Positions 6,077 to 52,439 of a stretch of 64,000 nucleotides of DNA are shown in pieces. The notes below the pieces were generated by a model. That model was not told the DNA's origin and did not search any database. It was given only the letters and a program-made list of their open reading frames with translations. The stretch is taken from NCBI GenBank assembly GCA_965603825.1, contig CBFDEM010000056.1, positions 186,001 to 250,000 on the forward strand, in the 5' to 3' direction. A program made the translations under genes and the position numbers. Each line of letters opens with the position of its first letter. The stretch's first letter is position 1. The DNA is from Blepharisma stoltei ATCC 30299 (Eukaryota > Protista > Ciliophora).

Positions 6077-6398
6077 TTAAATTATTTTTGATTCAGATTA
6101 TTTATTTAATGTTGTGATTTATGCTGATTTAGTATTACCTTAAATTGGAAAAAATATAAATAATCTTCAAATTGGCACTTTTCAGATAAAATCTAATTAT
6201 AATATATATCAAATAAAGCTTAGCAAGTTTATTACGTAAAATTATCATATATTTTTATCAATTATTTCTGTTTTTAATTACTGAGAATAAAGTTTTTCCA
6301 GCCAAATTTATTATTTTCTGCACTTGAACTATTCATCAATGAAATAAAATCTGACATGTATTCTCTATGACTCCATTTACGGCTTATAATAATTAGAC

Positions 6399-7064
6399 AT
6401 GGTGGAAGCTCCTCAGTCTGTACAATTCAAGCTAGTCTTAATTGGAGACGGTGGTGTAGGAAAAACCACTTTTGTCAAGCGCCACCTCACCGGTGAATAC
6501 GAAAAGCGCTATATCGCTACAGTAGGTGTCGATGTACATCCACTCACTTTTTACACAACCCGTGGCCCAGTCTGCTTCAATGTTTGGGATACCGCAGGAC
6601 AAGAAAAACTTTCAGGTCTTAGAGACGGCTATTATATTGGTGGCCAATGTGGCATTATTATGTTTGATGTCACTTCACGTATCACTTATAAGAATGTGCC
6701 AAAATGGCACAGAGATCTAGTAAGAGTATGTGAAAACATACCAATTGTGTTAGTTGGGAATAAAGTGGACGTCAAAGATAGAAAAGTCAAGGCTAAGCAA
6801 ATCACTTATCACAGAAGACACAATCTTCAATATTTTGATGTATCAGCCAAGAGCAATTATCAGTTCGAAAAGCCTTTCTTATGGCTTGCCAGAAGACTTT
6901 CTGGGGATGCTAATCTTATGCTTGTTGAAGCTCCTGTATTAGCTCCTCAAGACGTTCAGATTGATCCAGAACAGATGGCAGAAATTGAAAGAGAAAACGC
7001 AGAACTTGCAAGCTTGCAAAATGCTCCATTGCCAGCTGAAGATGAAGATGAAAACTTAGGCTAA
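6399..7064 (+). CDS. RAN: Ran GTPase, copy 1
   Basis: [43 protein letters not shown] and acidic tail DEDENLG. Confidence 0.97.
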
Positions 7065-7389
7065 GATGAATATTAATTAATTTTAACCTAATTTAATATT
7101 AATTAAATGCATTTTTATATGCTAAAGCATGCTAAATCGAGTTCTGATTGCGTAAAAGAAGCTCATTAAGCTTGCTTCCAAGGCAAAAATATCAAAAGAT
7201 TAGGGTCTTAACTCTGCTATTTTATTGTAAATTAATGTGTCTTATATATTAAATTGAGTACTATTGTCATACAGGCATAAGCAATAAGCTATAATAAGAA
7301 TTGGTATTTAGAATAGTAAATAGGGAATAGAATAGTAAAAATAGGAACTTAAGTATCTACCATTTACCCGCGATATAATAAATTTAGAT

Positions 7390-8052
7390 ATGGAAGCTCC
7401 ACAATCTGTACAATTCAAGCTTGTTTTAATTGGAGACGGAGGTGTTGGCAAGACAACCTTTGTCAAACGTCACCTCACAGGTGAGTACGAAAAGCGCTAT
7501 ATCGCCACAGTAGGCGTCGATGTACATCCACTGACATTTTACACAACCCGTGGCCCAGTCTGCTTCAATGTATGGGATACAGCTGGCCAAGAAAAACTTT
7601 CAGGTCTTAGAGACGGCTATTACATTGGGGGTCAATGTGGCATTATCATGTTCGATGTCACCTCACGTATTACTTATAAAAATGTCCCTAAATGGCATAG
7701 AGACCTCGTCAGAGTTTGCGAAAATGTTCCGATAGTCTTGGTTGGTAACAAAGTTGACGTTAAAGATAGAAAAGTCAAGGCTAAACAAATTACGTACCAC
7801 AGAAGACATAACCTTCAGTACTTTGATGTGTCTGCTAAATCCAACTACCAGTTTGAAAAGCCTTTCTTGTGGCTCGCCAGAAGGCTTTCAGGGGACCCTA
7901 ATCTTATGCTTGTAGAAGCCCCAGTTTTGGCACCGGTTGATGTTCAGATTGATCCAGAGCAGATGCTAGAAATCGAAAGAGAAAACGCTGAGCTTGCAAA
8001 CTTACAAAATGCTCCATTGCCTGCTGAAGATGAAGATGAAAATCTTGGTTAA
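7390..8052 (+). CDS. RAN: Ran GTPase, copy 2
   Basis: Same motifs as copy 1. The protein differs from copy 1 by about 5 substitutions and one residue of length. Confidence 0.97.
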
Positions 8053-39604: not shown

Positions 39605-40200
39605 TGGTAAGTTCAAATATGATGGAAAATGCTTAAAATAGATTTGAATGATAGGGTAAAAAATATTACATGATAGCGACAAGTAAATTTTGAATTATAA
39701 TTTTTCCTATATTTGCATTTTTATATAATTTCCGACTATTATGGTTTTTACAATAATTTCCCCAATTAAATAGTGGATATCAAAAACTTTGAGAGTTCAA
39801 ATTAAATTTATTATAAAATGAATTAGAACTACTAAGATTTTAGAATTATAGAGAGACTGCATTGTTGCTAATTAATAATAAAAATTAGTATTTTGCTAAT
39901 TTTATAAATTAATCAATTTAACAAGAAGAAATTGCATGCGAATTGATATGCTATTCTACCAATTTATAAAATAATCTTGTGTGCATTCAAACCGAACAAA
40001 ATTATTAAAATTTATAAAAATTGCTTTTCATATATTTTCCATATCCTTTTTATTAATTCTGTTTTTTTTTTGAGGATACCAGCTCTTTAATTTTGCTTAT
40101 ATCATAATATCTTTTGAGTTAACTTTCTTATAAAATTCAGGCAAATTGTGTATTATCAAATTCATGAATATCCATTATTAAATTATAAATAAATTAGAAA

Positions 40201-43200
40201 ATGCTTTTCATTGTTTATCTTAGCCTTATTCAATTTACACAATCACTTGGAGATTTCATGATTTACGTACTTTATTCTGAACAAACAAACTCAAATTTTG
40301 TATCAGATGCAAAAAACTACTTATCTAACACAATCAATCACAGTGAACAATTTTTTGATATTGAAGTCATAGAGATGGTTTTAAATCAAAATTTGGCTGA
40401 TATTCTAGATACCAACCTGAATTTTTTAATTGTTGACGCAACTTTTAACGTTTATTGGAATAGGATAATTTATGAGTACACTGAGAATAATAGCATAGTG
40501 AACCTTATATTGAGTCTTGAAGCTAGCCATAAAGGAGATTGACAGTTTTTTCTCCATAATTCTGTTGATCAACATCAAAATATTGCTGAATCAGTTATAA
40601 ACTTTTTTGGATGAAACAATTTAGCCATAGTTTCTAGTGAAGTCCAGGCAAACCTTAAAATAGCTTCTAATATTGAAAAACGGTTAAATAAAAAAGTTTC
40701 CCTAAAAGTGGTACTTCCAGATTCAATAATTGAAGAAAATATAGAAAATTATATCGGGAAAATCATAAAGCCTGAAGGTATTCAAATGTTTTTGATTCTT
40801 GTAGAAGGAGGACACTTTCAGTATTTATTAGGAGGTCTTAAAAATGAAAAAATCTATAAAAAAGGTGCAGGCATATTAGCTGGCAGTTCCAGTGTTTGGG
40901 CTGATGGCGAGGATGGAGTAATTATGTATGTTGAGAAGGGATTGGAAACAGCGACGTCGTATTCTGAATATGAGTTTTTGGCAATAAAGCAATTTACTGA
41001 TATGATACTTGATTTCAAATTAAAATATATGAGCACTGAGCCATTTGATTTACGGTTAATTCGGCAATTATTTGAGTCCAACACATATCAACATAGAAAA
41101 TTGCCAATTTTTTCAATAATAAATATTGACAAAGGAGAGAAGATTTTAAAAGCTGAATTTGAAAACACAAAATTTCAGGTCTTCAACCGCACATTTCTTT
41201 ATCCAGGAAATACAACTGCTTTTCCAAAAATATCAGAAACTGAGATTGTAATTTCAGTTGCTTCAGGATCAACTGAGCCAAATGGCTTGCCTAAAAATCT
41301 TTTGAACCCTCAAAATTTTTTGGGCTCTTTATATGCACAGTGAGTTGTAAATAACTCAACCTCTCTTCTTAACAATTTCTACATCACTCAGTTCCAAACA
41401 GACTGCGGCTCAAACACATATGATTTCAATTTTTATTACAACTGTATGAGTACAAACAAAGATCAGCTTGGTGTCGCATTTCTTTCTCCTTCATTCAGTG
41501 CTGGAGCAGTAGGATACGTTTCAGTTTTCCGAGAACTAGGACTAGAGATTCCTCAATGTGGGGCTGGTACTCGAGTTGCTACCTTATCTAATAAAACTCA
41601 ATATCCTGAATATATGAGGGTCACTACCAGTGCTGAATATTTTGCAGTTATTTTAGCCAAAGGAGTTGCGTATTTTGGCTGAAATAACGTTGCCGTCATT
41701 TATGCTAATAAATCATCGATTATCCCTGTCTACAAGAGATTTAAACAGCAATGCGAAACACTTGGGATAAATATTTTGAACGATGAAAACGAAAGAATGA
41801 TTTCGCCAGGATATTTGAGGACAAATTTCACGCAGTATAAGCATATTTTTAAAAATATTTATGAGTCTAAAGCGAGGGTTTGTATTATTCTTTTAGAAAA
41901 TCCGAATGCTTGGCATGCAATAGAAGGGCTCTATGATGTTGGGTTTAGAAAAGGGGATCTTGTTCCTGTTTTTTACAGTAAAACTGGTGGCGTTCAGGCT
42001 ATTTCAAATGAGCTTGATGAATATATAAAGAAAAGAAAAGAACTTATGCTTGGGTCTTTAAGCGTGTTTAGCAATGAGTATATTGGGGATTATGGAAAAC
42101 AAATTAAATCTGAAATAGCCCAAGCCTTTTACCCTCAAGATCCCAGCTATAAATGCTTTTCATTTGATGCCTTTATGCTAGCAGCACATGGGCTTGATTA
42201 TACCATTAATCGAGGTGATGATATAGAAAATCCATTAATACTGAATAAAAATTTGAGGAAACAAAGATTTGTAGGCTGCAGTGGAATTATTTCTATTGAA
42301 TCAAACAGCAATAATAGAAATTCTGCGCCTATAAATCTGTTTAATTTTTATTATAATAAAACGAGCAAGACTTATATCGAGACATCAGTCATAGTTTATA
42401 ATCCTGAGTCATCTACACCGTTTATTGTGATGCAACAAATAATGTGGCCTGGAGGCTCCAACACAGTGCCTGAAGACATGAGAGATCAAAATTTTGACTG
42501 CCCATTCGAAAAAAAGCTCGTCAGAAATTCTGGTAGTGGCATTGGAATGCTTTTTGGGGTATGTTTCTCAATTTTCTCAGTATCTGGTATTATCACTTGA
42601 TTAATATGGAAAAAATGGAAAATTGTTGATTATCCTAAATTGGAGAAAACTAAAAAGTTAAAGTTTGCTGATATGATTGTTTATTTGGTCATTGCTATTG
42701 AATTCTTTCAATATTTATATTTAGGTCCACCAATTTCTTCAATGAATTCTGCAGTAGCTTATGCTAGTGAAGCAACTTCTGTTGATTTAACAAGTTTTAT
42801 TACTTTTAAAGGGGCAATATTTTGGATTGCAATGATTATCACTCTTTGCACTGTTTTATTAAGTATATTTTTAAATATTTTTACAGTTACAAGATTTAAG
42901 CACGTTTTTAAATGAAGATGCTGTGTAAATTTAAGACTATTTGCAGAGACATTGATGCCTTTACTAGGAAATGCTTTATTTATCCCAATAATTTCATTTC
43001 TATTAAACGTGTTTTCATGCACTCATGCAACCGGAGACTCTATTTCTGATACTTATTTAGATAAAGATTGCTATCAATATTGTTGGCAAGGAAAACACTT
43101 AGCATTTGCTATGCAATCTATAATTGCAATTTTTATTTACGTTCCTTTGACTGTATACTACAGGCCAGTTTATCAAGAAGTGCAAGAATCCTTGCACATC

Positions 43201-43851
43201 AAAACAATGCCAAAATATCTTGTTATTAAAAGCTTAACACAAATATTCTTTGTAGTCCTTAAAAAAACCCTTGGTCTTTATCAGCCAGAAATCCATGGAT
43301 TTGTCTACTTGATTTTATTTTCATTCTACATTTGAATTATCCTTCGCATAAAAGCATATAATTATGACAGAATGTGTTTGCTGCTATTCATATCAATGCT
43401 AATGGTAGTTTGGTCTGTGCTGTTTACATCTTTAGCAAATATACTTGAAGTAACTTTTATACTTTGGCTGTGCTGCCAACTGACTGGCTGAGCTGCTATT
43501 TTACTCTGAGGAGCAATCAAAGCAAAAAAAATTCCATCCTTAATTATCACAGAAAAAGGAATTGACATATCCGTTTTGTTTAAATTTATGCTTGGGAAGA
43601 TTGAAGCTAACCAAATTGACAAAAAAGAAATCAAGTTTGTTTCTAAGAAAGAAATTACTGACCCTGATCAATGCAAAAAAGTTGATTCTAATGAAAAAAT
43701 AGCAGACGAAGAAAAAATAGAAATAGTTATTGAAGATGAGATGTCTGACGAAAAAGTTTTGAGCTCTGATAACGTGCTAAAAATTGATGAAAATGAAGAA
43801 GGAAAGAGTGACGATACAACAAGAATGAATACAAATAGGAAATTTATTTAA
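40201..43851 (+). CDS. Receptor-like protein, copy 1: signal peptide, Venus-flytrap (ANF-receptor-type) ectodomain, about 9 TM
   Basis: One frame (about 1,216 aa) with TGA=Trp. PQCGAGTRVATLSNKTQYPEYMRV, YFGWNNVAVIY, FDAFMLAAHGL and LRKQRFVGCSGIISI. Confidence 0.88.
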
Positions 43852-44534
43852 ATAATGTAGGTGCTATGATTTTTATGGCAATCTAAAGAATTTTTAAATT
43901 GTTGATGAATTTAATAATTCAATTTTTTTATATATGCCAATTTGTTTCTTGAATAGTTTTTAAATATATGCATTTATATATTTCTATTTGAAAATTTATT
44001 TATTCTTAAACTAATTAGAATTATTTCAAAATCTCACTACATAAAAATAATTATTTATATAATAATAAAAAATCCAAGAGCTTTTTATTTAATCTATTTA
44101 GATGGTTATTTTTTGATAAATTAAGCTTTTAATTCTTGGTAATTCTGAACGAATTAAAGAATTTCACTCATTTGGATTTTAAATAGACAGATAAATGGAT
44201 CATTATTAATCTAGAATTTTAATAAAGTTAGCCAGCTTTCAATTTGAGTTCAGCAAACAAATGCTGAAAAATACTTTAAAAATTTATAAAAAAATCGGAG
44301 AAAGCAAGTCATCACATAAGGATTCCACCTGATAAAATAGCGGGATTTTGCCAAAAAATATTTTCACTGGATTTATTCGAATACAAGGGTTTTCCTTTTT
44401 TTTTTAAAAGGTCAAGGATGTTCTAATTTTGAGGAAATTTTTTAAGTTTATTGATTTTGTGCAAGAAATTTAGGCAATATCGAACATTATAATAAATTAA
44501 ATTCATTCTGGCCTATAATATAATTAATTAAAAA

Positions 44535-47500
44535 ATGATGCTCATTATCTATTTTGGCCTTTTTCAACTAGCGTACTCACTTGGGGATATAATGATTTAT
44601 GTACTTTATTCTAGTCAAACAAATTCAAATTTTGTAAGCGATGCTAAAAACAACTTATATAACACAATTAATCAAAATGAACAATTTTTTGACATTCAAT
44701 TAATAGAGGTAGATTTAAATCAAAATTTGGCTGATAATTTAGATGCTAAAGAAAATTTTATGATTTTGGATGCAACTTTTGATATATTTTGGAATAAAAT
44801 GATTTATGAATATAGTGAGAATAACAATATAGTGAATCTAAAAATGAACTTTGATGCAAGCTATGTCGGAGAATGACAATTTTTTCTTCATAATTCTCCA
44901 GATCAGCATAAAGAAATAGCCGAATTGGTCATAAAATTTTTTGGTTGAACGAATTTGGCAATTATATCAAACAATTTTCCAATAAATGTGAAAATGGCAT
45001 CTAATATTGAAAAGCGGTTAAAAAATCAAGTTTCACAAAAAATAATTCTTCCGGATTCAATAAATAAAGAAAGAATTAGTAATTTAATTACCAAAATTAT
45101 TAAACCGGATGGGATTCAAATGTTTTTTATTTTAGAAGAAGGAGACAACTTTCAGTATTTAATTGAAAACCTCAAGGACGAGAAAGTTTATAAAAAAGGG
45201 GCAGGAGTTCTTGCTGGGAGCTCTAGCATTTGGGCAGCTAAAGAAGATGGCTTAATTATATATGTCGAAAAAGGTTTAGAAACTGCAGAATCATATACTG
45301 AGTATGAAATCTTAGCAATAAAGCATTTTACTGATATTATCCTAGAATTCAAATCTAGATATTCAAGCTCCCAACAGTTTGAAGGATTCAATTCACTTCT
45401 TCTTAAGCAATTACTTGAGTCAAGTACCTTTCAGCATAGAAAAATACCTATATTTTCAATTATAAATATTGACAATAATGATAAAATTTTGAAAGCTGAA
45501 GTAGAAAACTCAACATTTCACATATTTAATAAAACATTTATTTATCCTGGAAATACCACTTCTTTTCCAAAAATATCTGAAACAGAGATCGTATTATCAA
45601 TTGCTTCTGGATCATCTGAACCAAATGGTGTGTCAAATCTCTTTAACCCTCAGAACTTTTTGGGATCGTTATATGCACAGTGAGTCATAAATAACTCAAC
45701 CTCTCTGCTTAAAAATTTTTATATATCTCAGTTTCAAACCGATTGTGGAGCAAGTGTATACAATTTCGATTTTTATTATAAATGCATGAGCCCATTAAAA
45801 AGCCAGCTTGGGGTTGCGTTTCTTTCTCCTTCATTTGGTTCTGGAGCGGTTGGCTATATTTCGATTTTCCGAAAATTGGGATTGAAGATTCCTCATTGTG
45901 GCGCAGGAGTACGAACTGCTATATTATCAAATAAAACCGCATATCCTGAATATATGAGAGTAATAACAAGTATTGATTATTTTGCAGTAATTATAGCGAA
46001 AAGTTTAGCGTATTTTGGGTGAAAAAACGTCGCAGTTATTTATAATAGTAAAGCATCTGCCATAGCTGAATACAATACATTTGCTCAGGAATGTGAAGGG
46101 CTAGGAATCTCTATTTTAAATGATAAAGACAAAAGAATGCTTCCAGCAGGATACTTAAGGACTAATTTCACACAGTATAAACACATTTTTCAAAATATTT
46201 ATGAGACCAAGGTGAGGGTTTGTGTTTTGTTCGTTGATAATCCAAGCGCTTGGCATGTCATTGAAGGGCTTTATGATGTTGGATTTAGAGAAGGAGACCT
46301 AATTCCTATTTTCGACAGTAAAACCGGAGGTGTTCAGTCTATTTCAAATGACCTTGAGGAGTATATAAAAAAAAGGAAAGAACTTATGCTTGGATCTTTG
46401 AGTGTTTTTAGTAATGAATATATTGGAGACTACGGAAAACAAATTAAAGCTCAAATAACTCAAGCCTTTTACCCTCAAGATCCCAGCTATAAATGCTTTT
46501 CATTTGACGCCTTTATGCTAGCAGCCCACGGGCTTGACTATACAATTAACCGAGGGGATGATATAGAAAACCCATTGGTATTGAATAAAAATTTGAGAAA
46601 GCAAAGATTTGTAGGGTGCAGCGGAACAATTTCTATTGAATCAGATAGTAATAATAGAAATTCTGCTCCTATAAATCTCTTTAATTTTTATTATAATGAA
46701 ACTAGCAAATCATATATCGAGACTTCAGTAATAGTTTATTCCCCAGAGTCAGCAATTCCTTTTAATGTAATGCAGCAAGTAGCATGGCCAAAACAATCAA
46801 AAACTGTTCCAACTGATATAAGAGATAAAAATTGAGATTGCCCATTTGAAAAGCGGCTAGTAAGAAATTCTCAAGCTGGTGTTGGAGTTCTATTTGCCGT
46901 ATGCTTTTCGATTTTTTCTATTTCAGGGATTATTACCTGGCTTATATGGAAAAAATGAAAAATTGTTGATTATCCTAAATTAGAAAAACCAAAAAAATTA
47001 AAATTTGCTGATATGATGGTTTATTTGGTAATTGCAATTGAGTTCTTTCAATATATATATTTAGGTCCACCAGTCTCATCAATGAATTCTGCTGTAGCTT
47101 ATATGAGTGAAGCAACTTCTGTTGATTTAACAAGCTTCATTACTTTTAAGGGAACAATTTTTTGGATAACAATGATATTTACTCTTTGTGTTGTTTTATT
47201 AAGCATATTTCTGAATATATTTACAGTTACTAGATTTAAAAACTTACTCAAATGGAGAATTTGTATAAGCATAAGAGTTTTTGCAGAAGCATTAATGCCT
47301 CTTTTTGGCAATGCTTTATTTATTCCAATAATCTCATTTCTATTAAACATCTTTTCATGCACTCATGCTACTGGAGACTCTATTTCTGATACTTACCTAG
47401 ATAAAGATTGCTATCAATATTGCTGGAAAGGGAAGCATTTAGCATTCGCTCTGCTGTCAATAGTTGCAACTTTTATTTATGTGCCTTTAACTGTGTACTA

Positions 47501-48179
47501 CCGGCCTGTATATCAAGAAGTGCAAGAATCTTTACACATTAAAACAATGCCAAAATATCTCGTGATTAAAAGCTTAACTCAGATTTTTTTTGTAGTTCTC
47601 AAAAAAACACTTGGTCTTTATCAGCCAGAAGTGCATGGTTTTGTCTACTTGATTTTATTTTCAATTTATATTTGAATTGTCATTCGCTTGAAAGCATATA
47701 ATTACGATAAAATATGTTTGCTATTGCTTACAGCGATGCTTATGGTGGTTTGGTCTGTGTTATTTACTTCTTTATCAAATATACTTGAAGCAAACTTTAT
47801 ATATTGGCTTTGCTGTCAAATGACTGGATGGGCTGCTATTCTACTCTGGGGAGCTCTGAAAGCTAAAAAGCTCCCATCTATGATTATTATTGAAAAAGGA
47901 ATGGATATATCTATTCTTTTTAAATTTATGTTAGGAAAGGTTAAAGCTGAAGCAATTCACGCAAAAAAAATAAAATACGTTTCTAAGAAAGAAATAAATG
48001 ACTCATGCAAAATCAATATTTCACATGAAAAGGTAGATGAAAATAAAATAGAAATAATAATGGAAGAAAATGCATCTCAAATTTTCTGGAGCTCTGGCAA
48101 TGCATTGCGCATTGATGAGAATGAAGAAGCGAAAAACGATGAAACAGCTAGAATGAATTCAAACAGAAAACTCTTATAA
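44535..48179 (+). CDS. Receptor-like protein, copy 2
   Basis: Colinear paralog of copy 1. One frame (about 1,214 aa) with TGA=Trp. Confidence 0.88.
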
Positions 48180-48794
48180 TCAACACAAATTTAAAATGTT
48201 TTATCGTGCTAGAACGTTATAATTTTAATGAATAGATTAATTTATCTATTTTAATGTTAATTTTGTTTTATATATATTAAAGAATTTGTATTAGTTATTT
48301 CTTTGATTTAACTTTCAGCTAGTAAATAAATAATGAACTTTAGCTGGTACAATGAATAATTATTATTGATTTATCATTTAATAATCAAATAGCTTACGTT
48401 TGATTTATAATGTAATAAAGCAAAAGCAATTTAGCACGAATCAATATAAAATTCAAAAATCTTATTTAAATCAACATTAAATATTAATAATATTTAAACA
48501 AAACTGCTATCTTGCTTTACCAAAGAAAAGCAAATTTTGAGCTGATCTCTTTGTCGTTCAAATTTTGTTTTTAAAGGTCAAAATTTTTTATTCTAAGAAA
48601 ATGTTTTATGGTAGAAAATTTCATTTAAAATTGAAGGCTTAAACATTTGTTTTATTAATTCATAGCGAAAAGCTTCCTTATTCATTAAATTGAAAGAGAA
48701 TTTTCATTGTTTATTTGCCCTTATTTAATTAATGCGTTCATTAATCAATTATTTAATTCAGAGCGAAAAACTTCCTTATCAAATAAATTGAAAT

Positions 48795-51700
48795 ATGATT
48801 TTCATTGTTTATTTTGGCCTTATTCAACTAGTGCATTCACTTGGAGATATTATAATTTATGTGCTTTATTCGGAGAAAACAAATTCAAAATTTGTAACAG
48901 ACGCGCTAAATAGCTTATCTGACACAATTAATCAAAGTGAACAAATTTTTGATGTGAATTTCATAAGAATGGCTTCAAGCCACAATTTGAATGATATTTT
49001 AGATACAAACATAAACTTTATGATTATTGATGCGACTTTTGATGTATACTGAAATAGAATTATTTATGAATACACAGAGAATAACAAAATAATTAATCTC
49101 AAAATGAACTTTGAGGCAAGTTATGATGGAGAGTGGCTATTTTTTCTTCATAATTCAGCTGATCAACACCAGGAAATTTCAGAATTAATTCTAAATTTTT
49201 TTGGCTGAACTAATTTAGCAATTATATCAAACGATTTACCAAAAAATGTGAAAATTGTGTCAAATATCGAAAAACGGCTTAAAAATCAGATTTCCTTAAA
49301 AGTAATTCTTCCTGATGCAATAAATACAGGAAGAATAAGCAGTTTAATTAGAAAAATTATTATACCGGATGGGATTCAAATGTTTTTTATTTTAGAAGAA
49401 GGAGAAAATTTTGAGGATTTAATTGAAAATCTCAAGAAAGAAAAAGTTTATAAAAAAGGGGCAGGTGTTCTTGCTGGGAGCTCTAGCATTTGGGCAGCTA
49501 ATGAGGATGGCTTAATTTTGTATGTCGAAAAAGGTTTAGAAAATGCAGAATCATATTCTGAGTATGAAATCTTAGCAATAAAGCATTTTACAGATATGAT
49601 CCTAGAATTCAGATCTAGATATTCAAGCTCCCAACAGTCTGGAGAGTTCGATTCACTTCTTCTAAAGGAATTATTTGAATCAAACACTTATCAGCATAAA
49701 AAATTGCCTGCATTTTCAATAATAAATATAGACAGCAATCAGAAGATTTTGAAAGGTGAGGTAGAAAATTCAAGTTTTCACTTTTTCAATAGAACATTTA
49801 TTTTCCCTGGAAATACAACTGTCTTTCCTAAAATATCAAAAACAGAGATTGTGCTATCAATTGCTTCTGGATCAACTGAACCAAACGGACTTACAAATTT
49901 GTTAAATTCTCAGAACTTTTTAGGCTCTTTATATGCACAATGGGTTATGAATAACTCAACTGATCTACTAAAAAATTTTAACATTTTGCACTTTGAAACG
50001 GATTGCGGAGCAAATGTATACGATTTTGATTTTTATTATAACTGTATGAGCCCATTAAAGGATCAGCTTGGAGTTACATTTCTTTCACCCTCATTCAGTG
50101 CTGGAGCAGTTGGCTATATTACAATTTTCAGAAAATTAGGATTAGAGATCCCTCATTGTGGTGCTGGAACTCGAGTTGCAGCTCTCTCAAATAAAGCAGA
50201 ATATCCAGAGTACATGAGGGTCATAACAAGTTCAGAATATTTTGCTGTAATTATGGCAAAAAGTTTAGCTTATTTTGGATGAAGTAATGTAGCAGTTATT
50301 TATAGTGATAAATCGTCAGTCTTATCTGTATATAAAACATTCGTACAGCAATGCGAAATACTCGGAATATCTATATTGAATGACGCTGACAAAAGATTGA
50401 TTCCACAAACATATTTGAGGACAAATTATACACAGTATAAGCATATATTTAAAAATATATATGAATCTAAAGCAAGGGTCTGTGTTATTTTTATGGAAAA
50501 TCCATATGCTTGGCATGCAATAGAAGGATTTTATGACGCTGGGTTCAGGGAAGGCGAATTTGTTCCATTTTTTTACAGTAAAACTGGTGGGGTTCAATCT
50601 ATTTCAAATGACCTTGAAGAGCGTATAATGAAAAGAAAAAAGTTAATGCTAGGGTCTTTGAGTGCTTTTAGTGACGAGTACATTGGTGATTATGGAAAAC
50701 AAATTAAATCTGAAATAGCACAAGCCTTTTACCCTCAAGATCCCAGCTATAAATGTTTTTCATTTGATGCTTTTATGCTTGCAGCTCATGGACTTGATTA
50801 TACAATTAACAAAGGGGAAGATATAGAAAATTCGACAATATTGAATAAAAATTTGAGAAAACAAAAATTTGAAGGCTGCAGTGGAACAATTTCTATTGAA
50901 TCAAGTAACAATAATAGAAATTCAGCTCCTATTAATCTTTTTAACTTTTATTATAATACTACTGATGATACATACTACGAAACTTCAGTTGTTGTTTATA
51001 CACCAGGATCATCAATTCCGTTTAATATAATACAAAAAGTCACATGGCCAGGAAACTCCAAAACAATCCCAACAGATATGAGGCACAACAATTTTGACTG
51101 TCCGTTTGAAAAAATACTTGTAAGAAATTCTAGTGTTGGCATTGGAATGTTTCTTGTGGCATGCTTCACAATTTTCTCGATATCTGGAATTATCACTTGA
51201 ATAATATGAAAAAAATGGAAAATAGTTGACTTTCCAAAATTGGAGAAACCCAAAAAAATAAAATTTGCTGATATGATGGTTTATTTAGTTATTGCAATTG
51301 ATTTTTTTCAATATTTATATTTAGGTCCATCTAGTTCTTCAGTGAATTCTGTTGTTGCCTATATAAGTAAAGCAATTTCAGTTGACTTAGAAGGCTTAAT
51401 TTATTTCAAAGGGACAGTATTTTGGATTGCAATGGTCTTTACTCTTAGTGCTGCAACATTCAGTATATTTTTAAATATATTTACTGTTACTAGGTTCAAA
51501 AACATTTTCACATGAAAATTTTGTGTAAATTTGCGCTATTTTGCAGATGCTATATTGCCTCTTATAGGTAATGCTTTATTTATTCCAATAATTTCCTTTT
51601 TATTAAATATCTTTTCATGTACTCATGCAACTGGAGATTCTATTTCTGATACTTATTTAGATAAAGATTGCTATCAATATTGTTGGAAAGGAAAGCATTT

Positions 51701-52439
51701 AGCATTCGCTCTGCTATCTATAATAGCAATTTTTATTTATATGCCTTTAACGGTTTACTATCGGCCAATGTATCAAGAAACGCAAGAATCTTTGCATATT
51801 AAAACAATGCCAAAGTACCTTATCATTAAAAGTTTGGCCCAGGTTTTCTTTGTAGTTCTTAAAAAAACTATGGGCTTTTATCAGCCAGAAATACATGGAT
51901 TTGTATATTTGGTCTTATTCTTGATTTATTTATGGATTATACTTCGAGTAAAGGCATATAATTACGATAAAATATGTTTGCTGTTGTTTATAACAATGCT
52001 TATGGTGATTTGGTCTGTGTTGTTTACTTCTCTAGCAAATGTTCTTAAAGTGACTTTTATACTGTGACTCTGCTTTCAATTGACTGGCTGGGTTGCAATT
52101 GTAGTATGAGGAGCTTTTAAAGCGAAAAAAATTCAGTCCCTAATTATCACAGAAAAAGGTATGGACATATCCATTCTTTTTAAATTTATGCTTGGAAAGG
52201 TAGATGCGAGTGCAATCAGCAAAAAAGAAATTAATTTTGTTTCTAAGAAAGAAACAAAGAGCACATCAGAAAACAAAGGCTCTCTTGAAAAGGTAGATCA
52301 AGATCTAGTAGAAATAGTAGAAGAAGATAACGCATCAAAAGAATTAAAAAACTCTAATATTGTGCTTTGCATAAATGACAATGAAGATGAAGAAAATGAT
52401 GAAACTGCAAGGTTAGATTCAAATAGGAAATTTATATAG
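48795..52439 (+). CDS. Receptor-like protein, copy 3
   Basis: Colinear paralog of copies 1 and 2. One frame (about 1,214 aa) with TGA=Trp, ending at TAG 52437-52439. Confidence 0.88.

Follow-up and report, generated by a model that had tools for sequence, protein, structure and literature searches.

The window analyzed here, a stretch of 64,000 nucleotides from the ciliate Blepharisma stoltei, carries a tandem array of three colinear, intronless paralogs, designated g1, g2 and g3, on its plus strand. Each encodes a protein predicted to join two Venus-flytrap domains (D1 and D2) of periplasmic-binding-protein (PBP) type I to a membrane module of nine transmembrane (TM) helices, and the three belong to a large and diversified family within the genome. 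The genes are as follows.

40201..43851, + strand: g1, 1216 amino acids (aa) with TGA read as Trp, stop codon TAA (open reading frame translation)
44535..48179, + strand: g2, 1214 aa, architecture as in g1; identity to g1 68/78/85% in D1/D2/TM
48795..52439, + strand: g3, 1214 aa counted from the Met that aligns with the g1 and g2 starts, stop codon TAG; identity to g1 66/78/79% in D1/D2/TM

As a first-pass annotation of this sequence had proposed, the genes are intact only when TGA is read as Trp. The standard code fragments them into pieces of at most 357 aa, and the alternatives considered (standard, TAR=Gln) were rejected because the genes are broken under each. TGA codons number 9, 7 and 9 in g1, g2 and g3, respectively; several of these columns hold Trp in 30-79% of the aligned database homologues, and the TGA of one paralog frequently stands opposite the TGG of another. 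In NCBI, two proteins under the name B. stoltei agree in every letter with the TGA=Trp translations of loci in the source genome, and with them the earlier guess that the organism is Blepharisma proved right. The published macronuclear genome of B. stoltei ATCC 30299 likewise uses UGA for Trp (bioRxiv 2021.12.14.471607).

Two flytraps on a nine-helix membrane module

To map domains, window proteins were searched as separate pieces, and structure models were built for natural paralogs (L031 and P0080) rather than for g1-g3 themselves; read-through (TGA=Trp) translation was confined to local scripts. The following features were assigned to g1.

40201..40248, + strand: predicted signal peptide, about residues 1-16; the N-terminus is hydrophobic in g1-g3 and in most other family members
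40249..41235, + strand: flytrap domain 1 (D1), PBP type I, divergent, residues 17-345 (profile homology, model secondary structure)
41236..42465, + strand: flytrap domain 2 (D2), PBP type I / ANF_receptor, residues 346-755 (PF01094, paralog model)
42499..42507, + strand: CPF motif of the linker that precedes TM1, its invariant Cys767 present in 100% of 111 family members
42532..43530, + strand: nine-helix membrane module, residues 778-1110 (paralog model mapped to g1, structural matches)
43531..43848, + strand: charged, variable C-terminal tail of about 100 aa, inferred from topology to be cytosolic

The first-pass annotation had recognized one clear ANF-type flytrap and suspected a second, degenerate one at the N-terminus, and both are upheld. 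Against the PF01094 cut-off of 25.4 bits, the g3 piece passes at 37.8 bits while the g1 and g2 pieces, which hold partial domains, score 21.7 and 19.4; the g3 locus read through reaches 63 bits. The B. stoltei paralog P0080, which has 57% and 63% identity to g1 in D1 and D2, yielded an ectodomain model from 102 sequences with two alpha/beta domains (predicted local distance difference, pLDDT, 94; predicted template-modeling score, pTM, 0.91). The D2 of this model aligns with GABA-B, LivK, LivJ and AtGLR3.4 at Z 34-36 and a root-mean-square deviation of about 3-4 A (Z 33-36 when mGluR and T1R are included), with scores of 36.5 to GABA-B2 and 35.6 to LivK, and it matches CaSR by Foldseek at E 1e-19. 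As modeled, D2 is a bilobed PBP-I fold. D1 was assigned as a flytrap by profile homology, the structure search having used no separate D1 model: it is homologous to D2 by HHalign (98.7%, E 3e-16), the ectodomain profile matches the amino-terminal domain (ATD) of GluN1 within D1 (i-E 1e-7), and PF01094 matches D1 of conserved paralogs. By these profile matches the second, N-terminal flytrap is real. All motifs quoted in the earlier description are found in the translations. The ectodomain of each protein carries at least seven N-glycosylation sequons, and the ectodomain and linker of g1 contain eight cysteines in total, without EGF/ephrin-like cysteine repeats.

The membrane module was modeled on L031, a TGA-free paralog whose module is the same as that of the window clade (HHalign 100%). 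The model (pLDDT 85, pTM 0.82) has nine long helices, in agreement with the approximately nine hydrophobic helices counted at first pass; TM2 is followed by a short amphipathic helix and TM4 by a beta-hairpin loop. In g1 this extracellular hairpin holds invariant Cys940, Cys957, Cys961 and His966. The three loop cysteines and Cys767, four extracellular residues in all, are invariant across the family alignment, and D824 (99%), Q837 (97%), H966, N1054 and R1057 are conserved in more than 90% of the family; conserved polar residues within the membrane comprise D824, Q837, R988, K1010, Q1014, N1054 and R1057. The tail, earlier called acidic, is highly charged but mildly acidic at most (26 D/E versus 18 K/R in g1, 17 versus 17 in g2), and it holds no recognizable cytosolic effector domain.

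The module has no Pfam family, as 134 aligned TM sequences (60 + 74) gave only scattered weak matches at E up to 1 among the 25 top families listed, and a search of PDB sequences with the TM profile returned nothing at E 10. Word searches with the TM region, the TM profile and D2 returned family members and one plant GLR only, and are uninformative on distant relatives. Checked specifically for a canonical 7tm_3 domain (PF00003), the Pfam searches of window pieces and family TM sequences list no match, and no fold of a G-protein-coupled receptor (GPCR) is among the VIA top 50 for the TM model, although the library is rich in class C structures. A receptor guanylyl cyclase or natriuretic peptide receptor was rejected because there are nine TM helices instead of one and the tail of about 100 aa lacks a kinase-like or cyclase domain. 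The initial view that neither class C GPCR nor receptor guanylyl cyclase architecture fits these proteins therefore holds.

The module does have likenesses among ESM Atlas clusters and predicted structures. In the ESM Atlas, eukaryotic clusters reach feature scores of 0.91-0.94 to the TM module, one of them with PF06011. Predicted structures resemble the L031 TM model at template-modeling (TM) scores of 0.58-0.63 over 279-303 of 370 residues; across predicted models the scores range over 0.47-0.63, with PF06011-bearing ones at 0.47 and 0.62. The matches come from chlorophytes, haptophytes, heteroloboseans, sponges and cnidarians, and the domains they carry are PF06011, DUF7630, Ephrin_rec_like, LRR and Chlam_PMP. 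Compared by eye, TgCRMPA (sequence from PMC9815656) and the family consensus run through their motifs in one order. TM4 ends in a Cys; the loop bears Y/F-L and another Cys; the helix after it contains a Pro, and TM6 a Lys; Q/K-P-F/Y...N-x-L comes late. In predicted structure, the module resembles the nine-helix module of CRMP/DUF7630-associated and PF06011 (Pkd2/Flc) proteins. Two giant-virus (Megaviridae) proteins, BFVD A0A5J6VI06 and A0A5J6VHI1, have the same nine-helix fold; a giant-virus protein matches at E 5e-4, and the TM score to a viral 'TRP' protein is 0.34.

Two groups of known proteins thus bear comparison over the whole architecture. The CRMPs (TgCRMPA/B, PfCRMP1-4, Tetrahymena TTHERM_00442310/00637180) also set a large ectodomain with a signal peptide on a nine-TM module (PMC9815656). 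They share, by eye, the Cys-bearing loop after the fourth helix and the late motif, have expanded repertoires in free-living alveolates, and have been proposed to act in sensing. They differ in that ephrin-like repeats stand on the nine helices (PMC9815656), with EGF/ephrin-like/DUF7630 cysteine repeats in place of the two PBP-I flytraps, and in a tail of 478-565 aa as against about 100 aa. They act in contact-triggered exocytosis (PMC9815656, PMC9670195), where they set off the discharge of rhoptries in Toxoplasma and of mucocysts in Tetrahymena (PMC9670195). The fungal PF06011 'TRP-like' proteins (S. pombe Pkd2, Trp663 and Trp1322; Flc1-4) share the signal peptide, extracellular domain, nine TM helices and disordered cytosolic tail; nine TM helices are predicted for S. 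pombe Pkd2 (bioRxiv 2022.08.11.503631), which passed Ca2+ when reconstituted in vitro (PMC9727806). The similarity in predicted structure is to PF06011-bearing clusters. These proteins have an Ig/ML-like lipid-binding ectodomain and 3-4 genes as opposed to more than 150, and the flytrap family has no PF06011 score. With that score and the CRMP cysteine repeats both absent, the family is filed as neither, yet it probably works like them.

Other receptors resemble the proteins in part. Class C GPCRs (GABA-B, mGluR, CaSR, T1R) share a flytrap, to which D2 aligns as described above, adjoining a multipass TM domain, whereas the flytrap family has two flytraps and nine helices of another fold and lacks 7tm_3 and the cysteine-rich domain. 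In ionotropic glutamate receptors (iGluR) and plant GLR there are likewise two stacked clamshell layers, and by sequence D2 is nearest to the amino-terminal domains of AtGLR3.4 and GluN1; these receptors, however, have a split PBP-II ligand domain and an M1-M4 pore, for which the family proteins gave no Pfam or structure match, both of their clamshells being PBP type I. Proteins of green-algal type combining a flytrap with Ephrin_rec_like and DUF7630 (ESM Atlas clusters of about 1460-1500 aa; scores 0.87 and 0.79) place an N-terminal flytrap on a CRMP-type protein. These uncharacterized proteins are leads only; they contain cysteine repeats, and the comparison covered their flytrap end. Because the Atlas leads suggest flytrap-bearing CRMP-type proteins in green algae, the pairing of flytrap and CRMP-type module may be older than the ciliates.

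Family diversity, selection and transcription

The TM piece of g2 identifies at least 150 loci in the genome (230-253 candidates) and PF01094 at least 106, many as tandem arrays. Architecture is identical in all 79 exhaustive-search matches of at least 1000 aa and in every ANF locus fetched. Named members come from Blepharisma and Stentor only, the others lying on gene-dense eukaryotic metagenome contigs, and the nearest ESM Atlas clusters are mostly Ciliophora. One eukaryotic metagenome contig of 52% GC (L051:6570-17720) holds three family genes in tandem, from different subclades. UniRef labels family members by the ANF domain only, and no paper on the flytrap/nine-helix family was found in the literature searched, whose coverage was incomplete. 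The first-pass description of an uncharacterized family stands in this respect, and the family is large; it needs amending in that the TM module has relatives (CRMP, DUF7630-associated, PF06011). The pairing of flytrap and nine-helix module, the flytrap tandem and the expansion are described in none of the papers found, both parts being themselves of known kinds.

The family tree comprises one slow, conserved clade with support of 1.0, which contains five genes from Blepharisma, four from Stentor and members from metagenomes, and many fast clades, in one of which g1-g3 fall together. In the slow clade the class-C-like pocket motifs S-Y-x-A-T/S and D-x-aromatic-G, whose meaning we take to be that known from mGluR and GABA-B, are retained; across the fast clades the pocket loops are highly variable, and in g1-g3 they are altered. 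In the closest paralog outside the window (L048:1705-5334, G000:C30) an in-frame stop separates reading frames of 263 and 946 aa, and this locus may be a pseudogene, an allele or an assembly error; L047 is a further split member. On contigs C1, C8, C25, C30, C35, C36, C39, C43 and C51 the genome has further arrays, distinct from these, of large genes that match DUF7630 and, weakly, PF06011; they are probably its CRMP-like repertoire. Its PF06011 and PF24633 matches sit at loci other than those of the flytrap family, and no TRP-like module was seen among the loci examined.

The ratio of non-synonymous to synonymous substitution (dN/dS) between the window paralogs is 0.10-0.29 in D1, D2 and TM and 0.20-0.39 in the C-terminal tail, and 29 of the 38 strain differences listed in g1 are synonymous (9 non-synonymous). 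Because dN/dS is low and the strain differences are mostly synonymous, g1-g3 are under purifying selection. DNA identity between the paralogs is raised (up to 91%) in patches at about residues 180-300 and 600-720, a pattern which suggests gene conversion inside the array.

Contigs of four probable RNA runs jointly cover most of g1 (40219-43854) with no splice joints, and cover neither 40001-40200 nor 44001-44200. Transcription of the array is thereby indicated and probable, if not proven. The interval 44284-44499, which lies in the gap upstream of g2 and has no open reading frame, is covered by contigs in three of the four runs and may represent a long 5' untranslated region, a small transcript or DNA carry-over.

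The trio of proteins of about 1,215 aa described at first pass consists of three intact paralogs as stated, with one start corrected. From its first in-frame Met (48732) the g3 reading frame gives 1235 aa, and the Met that aligns with the g1 and g2 starts and opens the signal peptide is at 48795. From the sequence, the latter is most likely the start because the ATG at 48732 falls inside a decayed duplicate of the start region.

48655..48740, + strand: degenerated tandem copy of the start region of g3, copying 48753-48839 at a spacing of 98 bp, its own ATG lost (87% identity over 62 nt, 81% over 27 nt)

This 98-bp tandem duplication, at 48655-48839, yields a misleading 21-codon extension of g3. 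The genes neighboring the array are ordinary eukaryotic ones (an RFC subunit, a Clp-like ATPase, an NIF phosphatase, USP, Hid1 and Sof1) with no evident connection to it. At 6393-7064 and 7345-8052 the window also carries an adjacent, near-identical pair of Ran-like GTPase genes, as judged by N-terminal sequence.

Proposed function and alternative explanations

On balance, g1-g3 belong to a heterotrich-ciliate family of what are probably diversified cell-surface small-molecule receptors with a non-GPCR output. This reading draws on the fixed architecture, the expansion to at least 150 loci, the variable pockets, purifying selection and the intact flytrap folds, and we infer from it that g1-g3 bind ligands and signal. 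In the mechanism that we propose, a small solute would bind in a flytrap cleft, most likely that of the membrane-proximal flytrap, and closure of the cleft would be relayed into a helical bundle of CRMP/Pkd2 type by way of the linker with Cys767, which is probably joined by a disulfide to the hairpin loop. The bundle would then signal with no 7TM G-protein module involved, either by conducting cations (Ca2+), as reported for yeast Pkd2, or via partner proteins, the route proposed for CRMPs, and by analogy with these systems we rate the two outputs about evenly. Tandem duplication and divergence of the pocket would create a range of ligands, including food, conspecific and environmental cues. 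A bolder version, a hitherto undescribed class of ligand-gated receptors or channels that we consider unlikely as a whole, has the tandem flytraps gating the CRMP/Pkd2-type nine-helix module, with the conserved clade supplying a common subunit while over 100 variable ones set ligand choice, the ensemble forming the main heterotrich chemosensory repertoire and possibly including a gamone receptor. The assignment of the slow clade as a shared subunit is speculation.

Several observations weigh against the receptor reading. The D2 pocket of g1-g3 has lost the canonical amino-acid-binding motif, so that no particular class of ligand is favored, and flytrap folds may serve for dimerization without binding a ligand, as in the iGluR ATD and GABA-B2. 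On the membrane side, the 134 aligned TM sequences gave no match to PF06011 (cut-off 28.5 bits) at E up to 1 among the 25 top families listed, and comparison of the TM model with the PDB gave no credible match to a solved structure (Foldseek, best E 0.33; VIA, best Z 7.8). The link to PF06011 and CRMPs is accordingly a resemblance, drawn from predicted-model comparison and a visual match of motifs as distinct from scored sequence homology. Transcription is no more than indicated because the runs are guessed to be RNA and the intergenic 44284-44499 is covered as well.

Several alternatives were weighed. If the nine-helix module, alone or as an oligomer, formed a pore gated by the flytraps, the proteins would be ligand-gated cation channels and a ciliate counterpart of ionotropic chemoreceptors, a sharper form of the receptor interpretation to which the Ca2+ permeation of Pkd2, the conserved intramembrane polar residues and the missing cytosolic effector domain lend themselves. 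With the sequence link to PF06011 undetected and no channel activity shown for CRMPs, we hold it as a tentative possibility. Somewhat less likely are variable surface or adhesion proteins serving contact, prey or self recognition or forming a coat, whose flytraps bind macromolecules or nothing and which might trigger extrusome discharge on contact as CRMPs do (PMC9670195). Surface antigens, too, typically form large tandem arrays and diverge fast, the ectodomain sequons would suit this role, and the ANF-type flytraps of natriuretic-peptide receptors bind peptides; yet the ectodomain is under strong purifying selection, both flytrap folds are intact, and the conserved clade retains the small-ligand motif. 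Import of solutes, in which the flytraps capture a substrate that the nine-helix module transports, recalls the PBP-I substrate binders of bacterial ABC importers and the original description of Flc proteins as flavin carriers; Flc1 is linked to flavin transport (PMC9600462). The TM model has no transporter fold match, however, and more than 150 diverging paralogs suit sensing better than uptake, which makes an importer improbable.

Two more specific identities appear very improbable. The first-pass annotation speculated that the genes might encode pheromone or amino-acid receptors, and gamone 2 is indeed a small aromatic acid (bioRxiv 2021.12.14.471607), a ligand type of PBP-I proteins, whose structure matches here include hydroxybenzoate binders; gamone receptors are, moreover, still putative (PMC10892320). 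Against a receptor for gamone 2 (or gamone 1), the array represents 3 of at least 150 loci in a family found also in Stentor and many other genomes, and g1 is covered by contigs from all runs despite differing strain alleles. There is consequently no basis to single out g1-g3 for this role, and nothing links them to gamone 2. Highly diverged class C GPCRs, with 7TM plus two extra helices and G-protein signaling, are equally remote. The flytraps are similar to those of GABA-B, CaSR, mGluR and T1R, and PANTHER called TgCRMPa GPCR-like (PMC9670195), but this identity is largely refuted by the fold: no PF00003 match is listed, the TM model gave no 7TM structure match at the scores quoted above, and a survey of ciliate GPCRs found no class C members (PMC9960496).

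The receptor reading carries implications for both ciliate biology and the nine-helix proteins. Hardly any chemoreceptors of ciliates have been identified so far, those for the Blepharisma gamones included, and a family of over 150 flytrap receptors whose pockets vary would be a direct candidate, accessible to RNA interference in Stentor or Blepharisma. The CRMP/Pkd2-type module, by analogy, would give the membrane part of the flytrap family a concrete functional counterpart. Conversely, the family could provide CRMP/Pkd2 research with a nine-helix member whose ectodomain has a fold of established small-ligand binding, which would allow the module to be activated and its output recorded.

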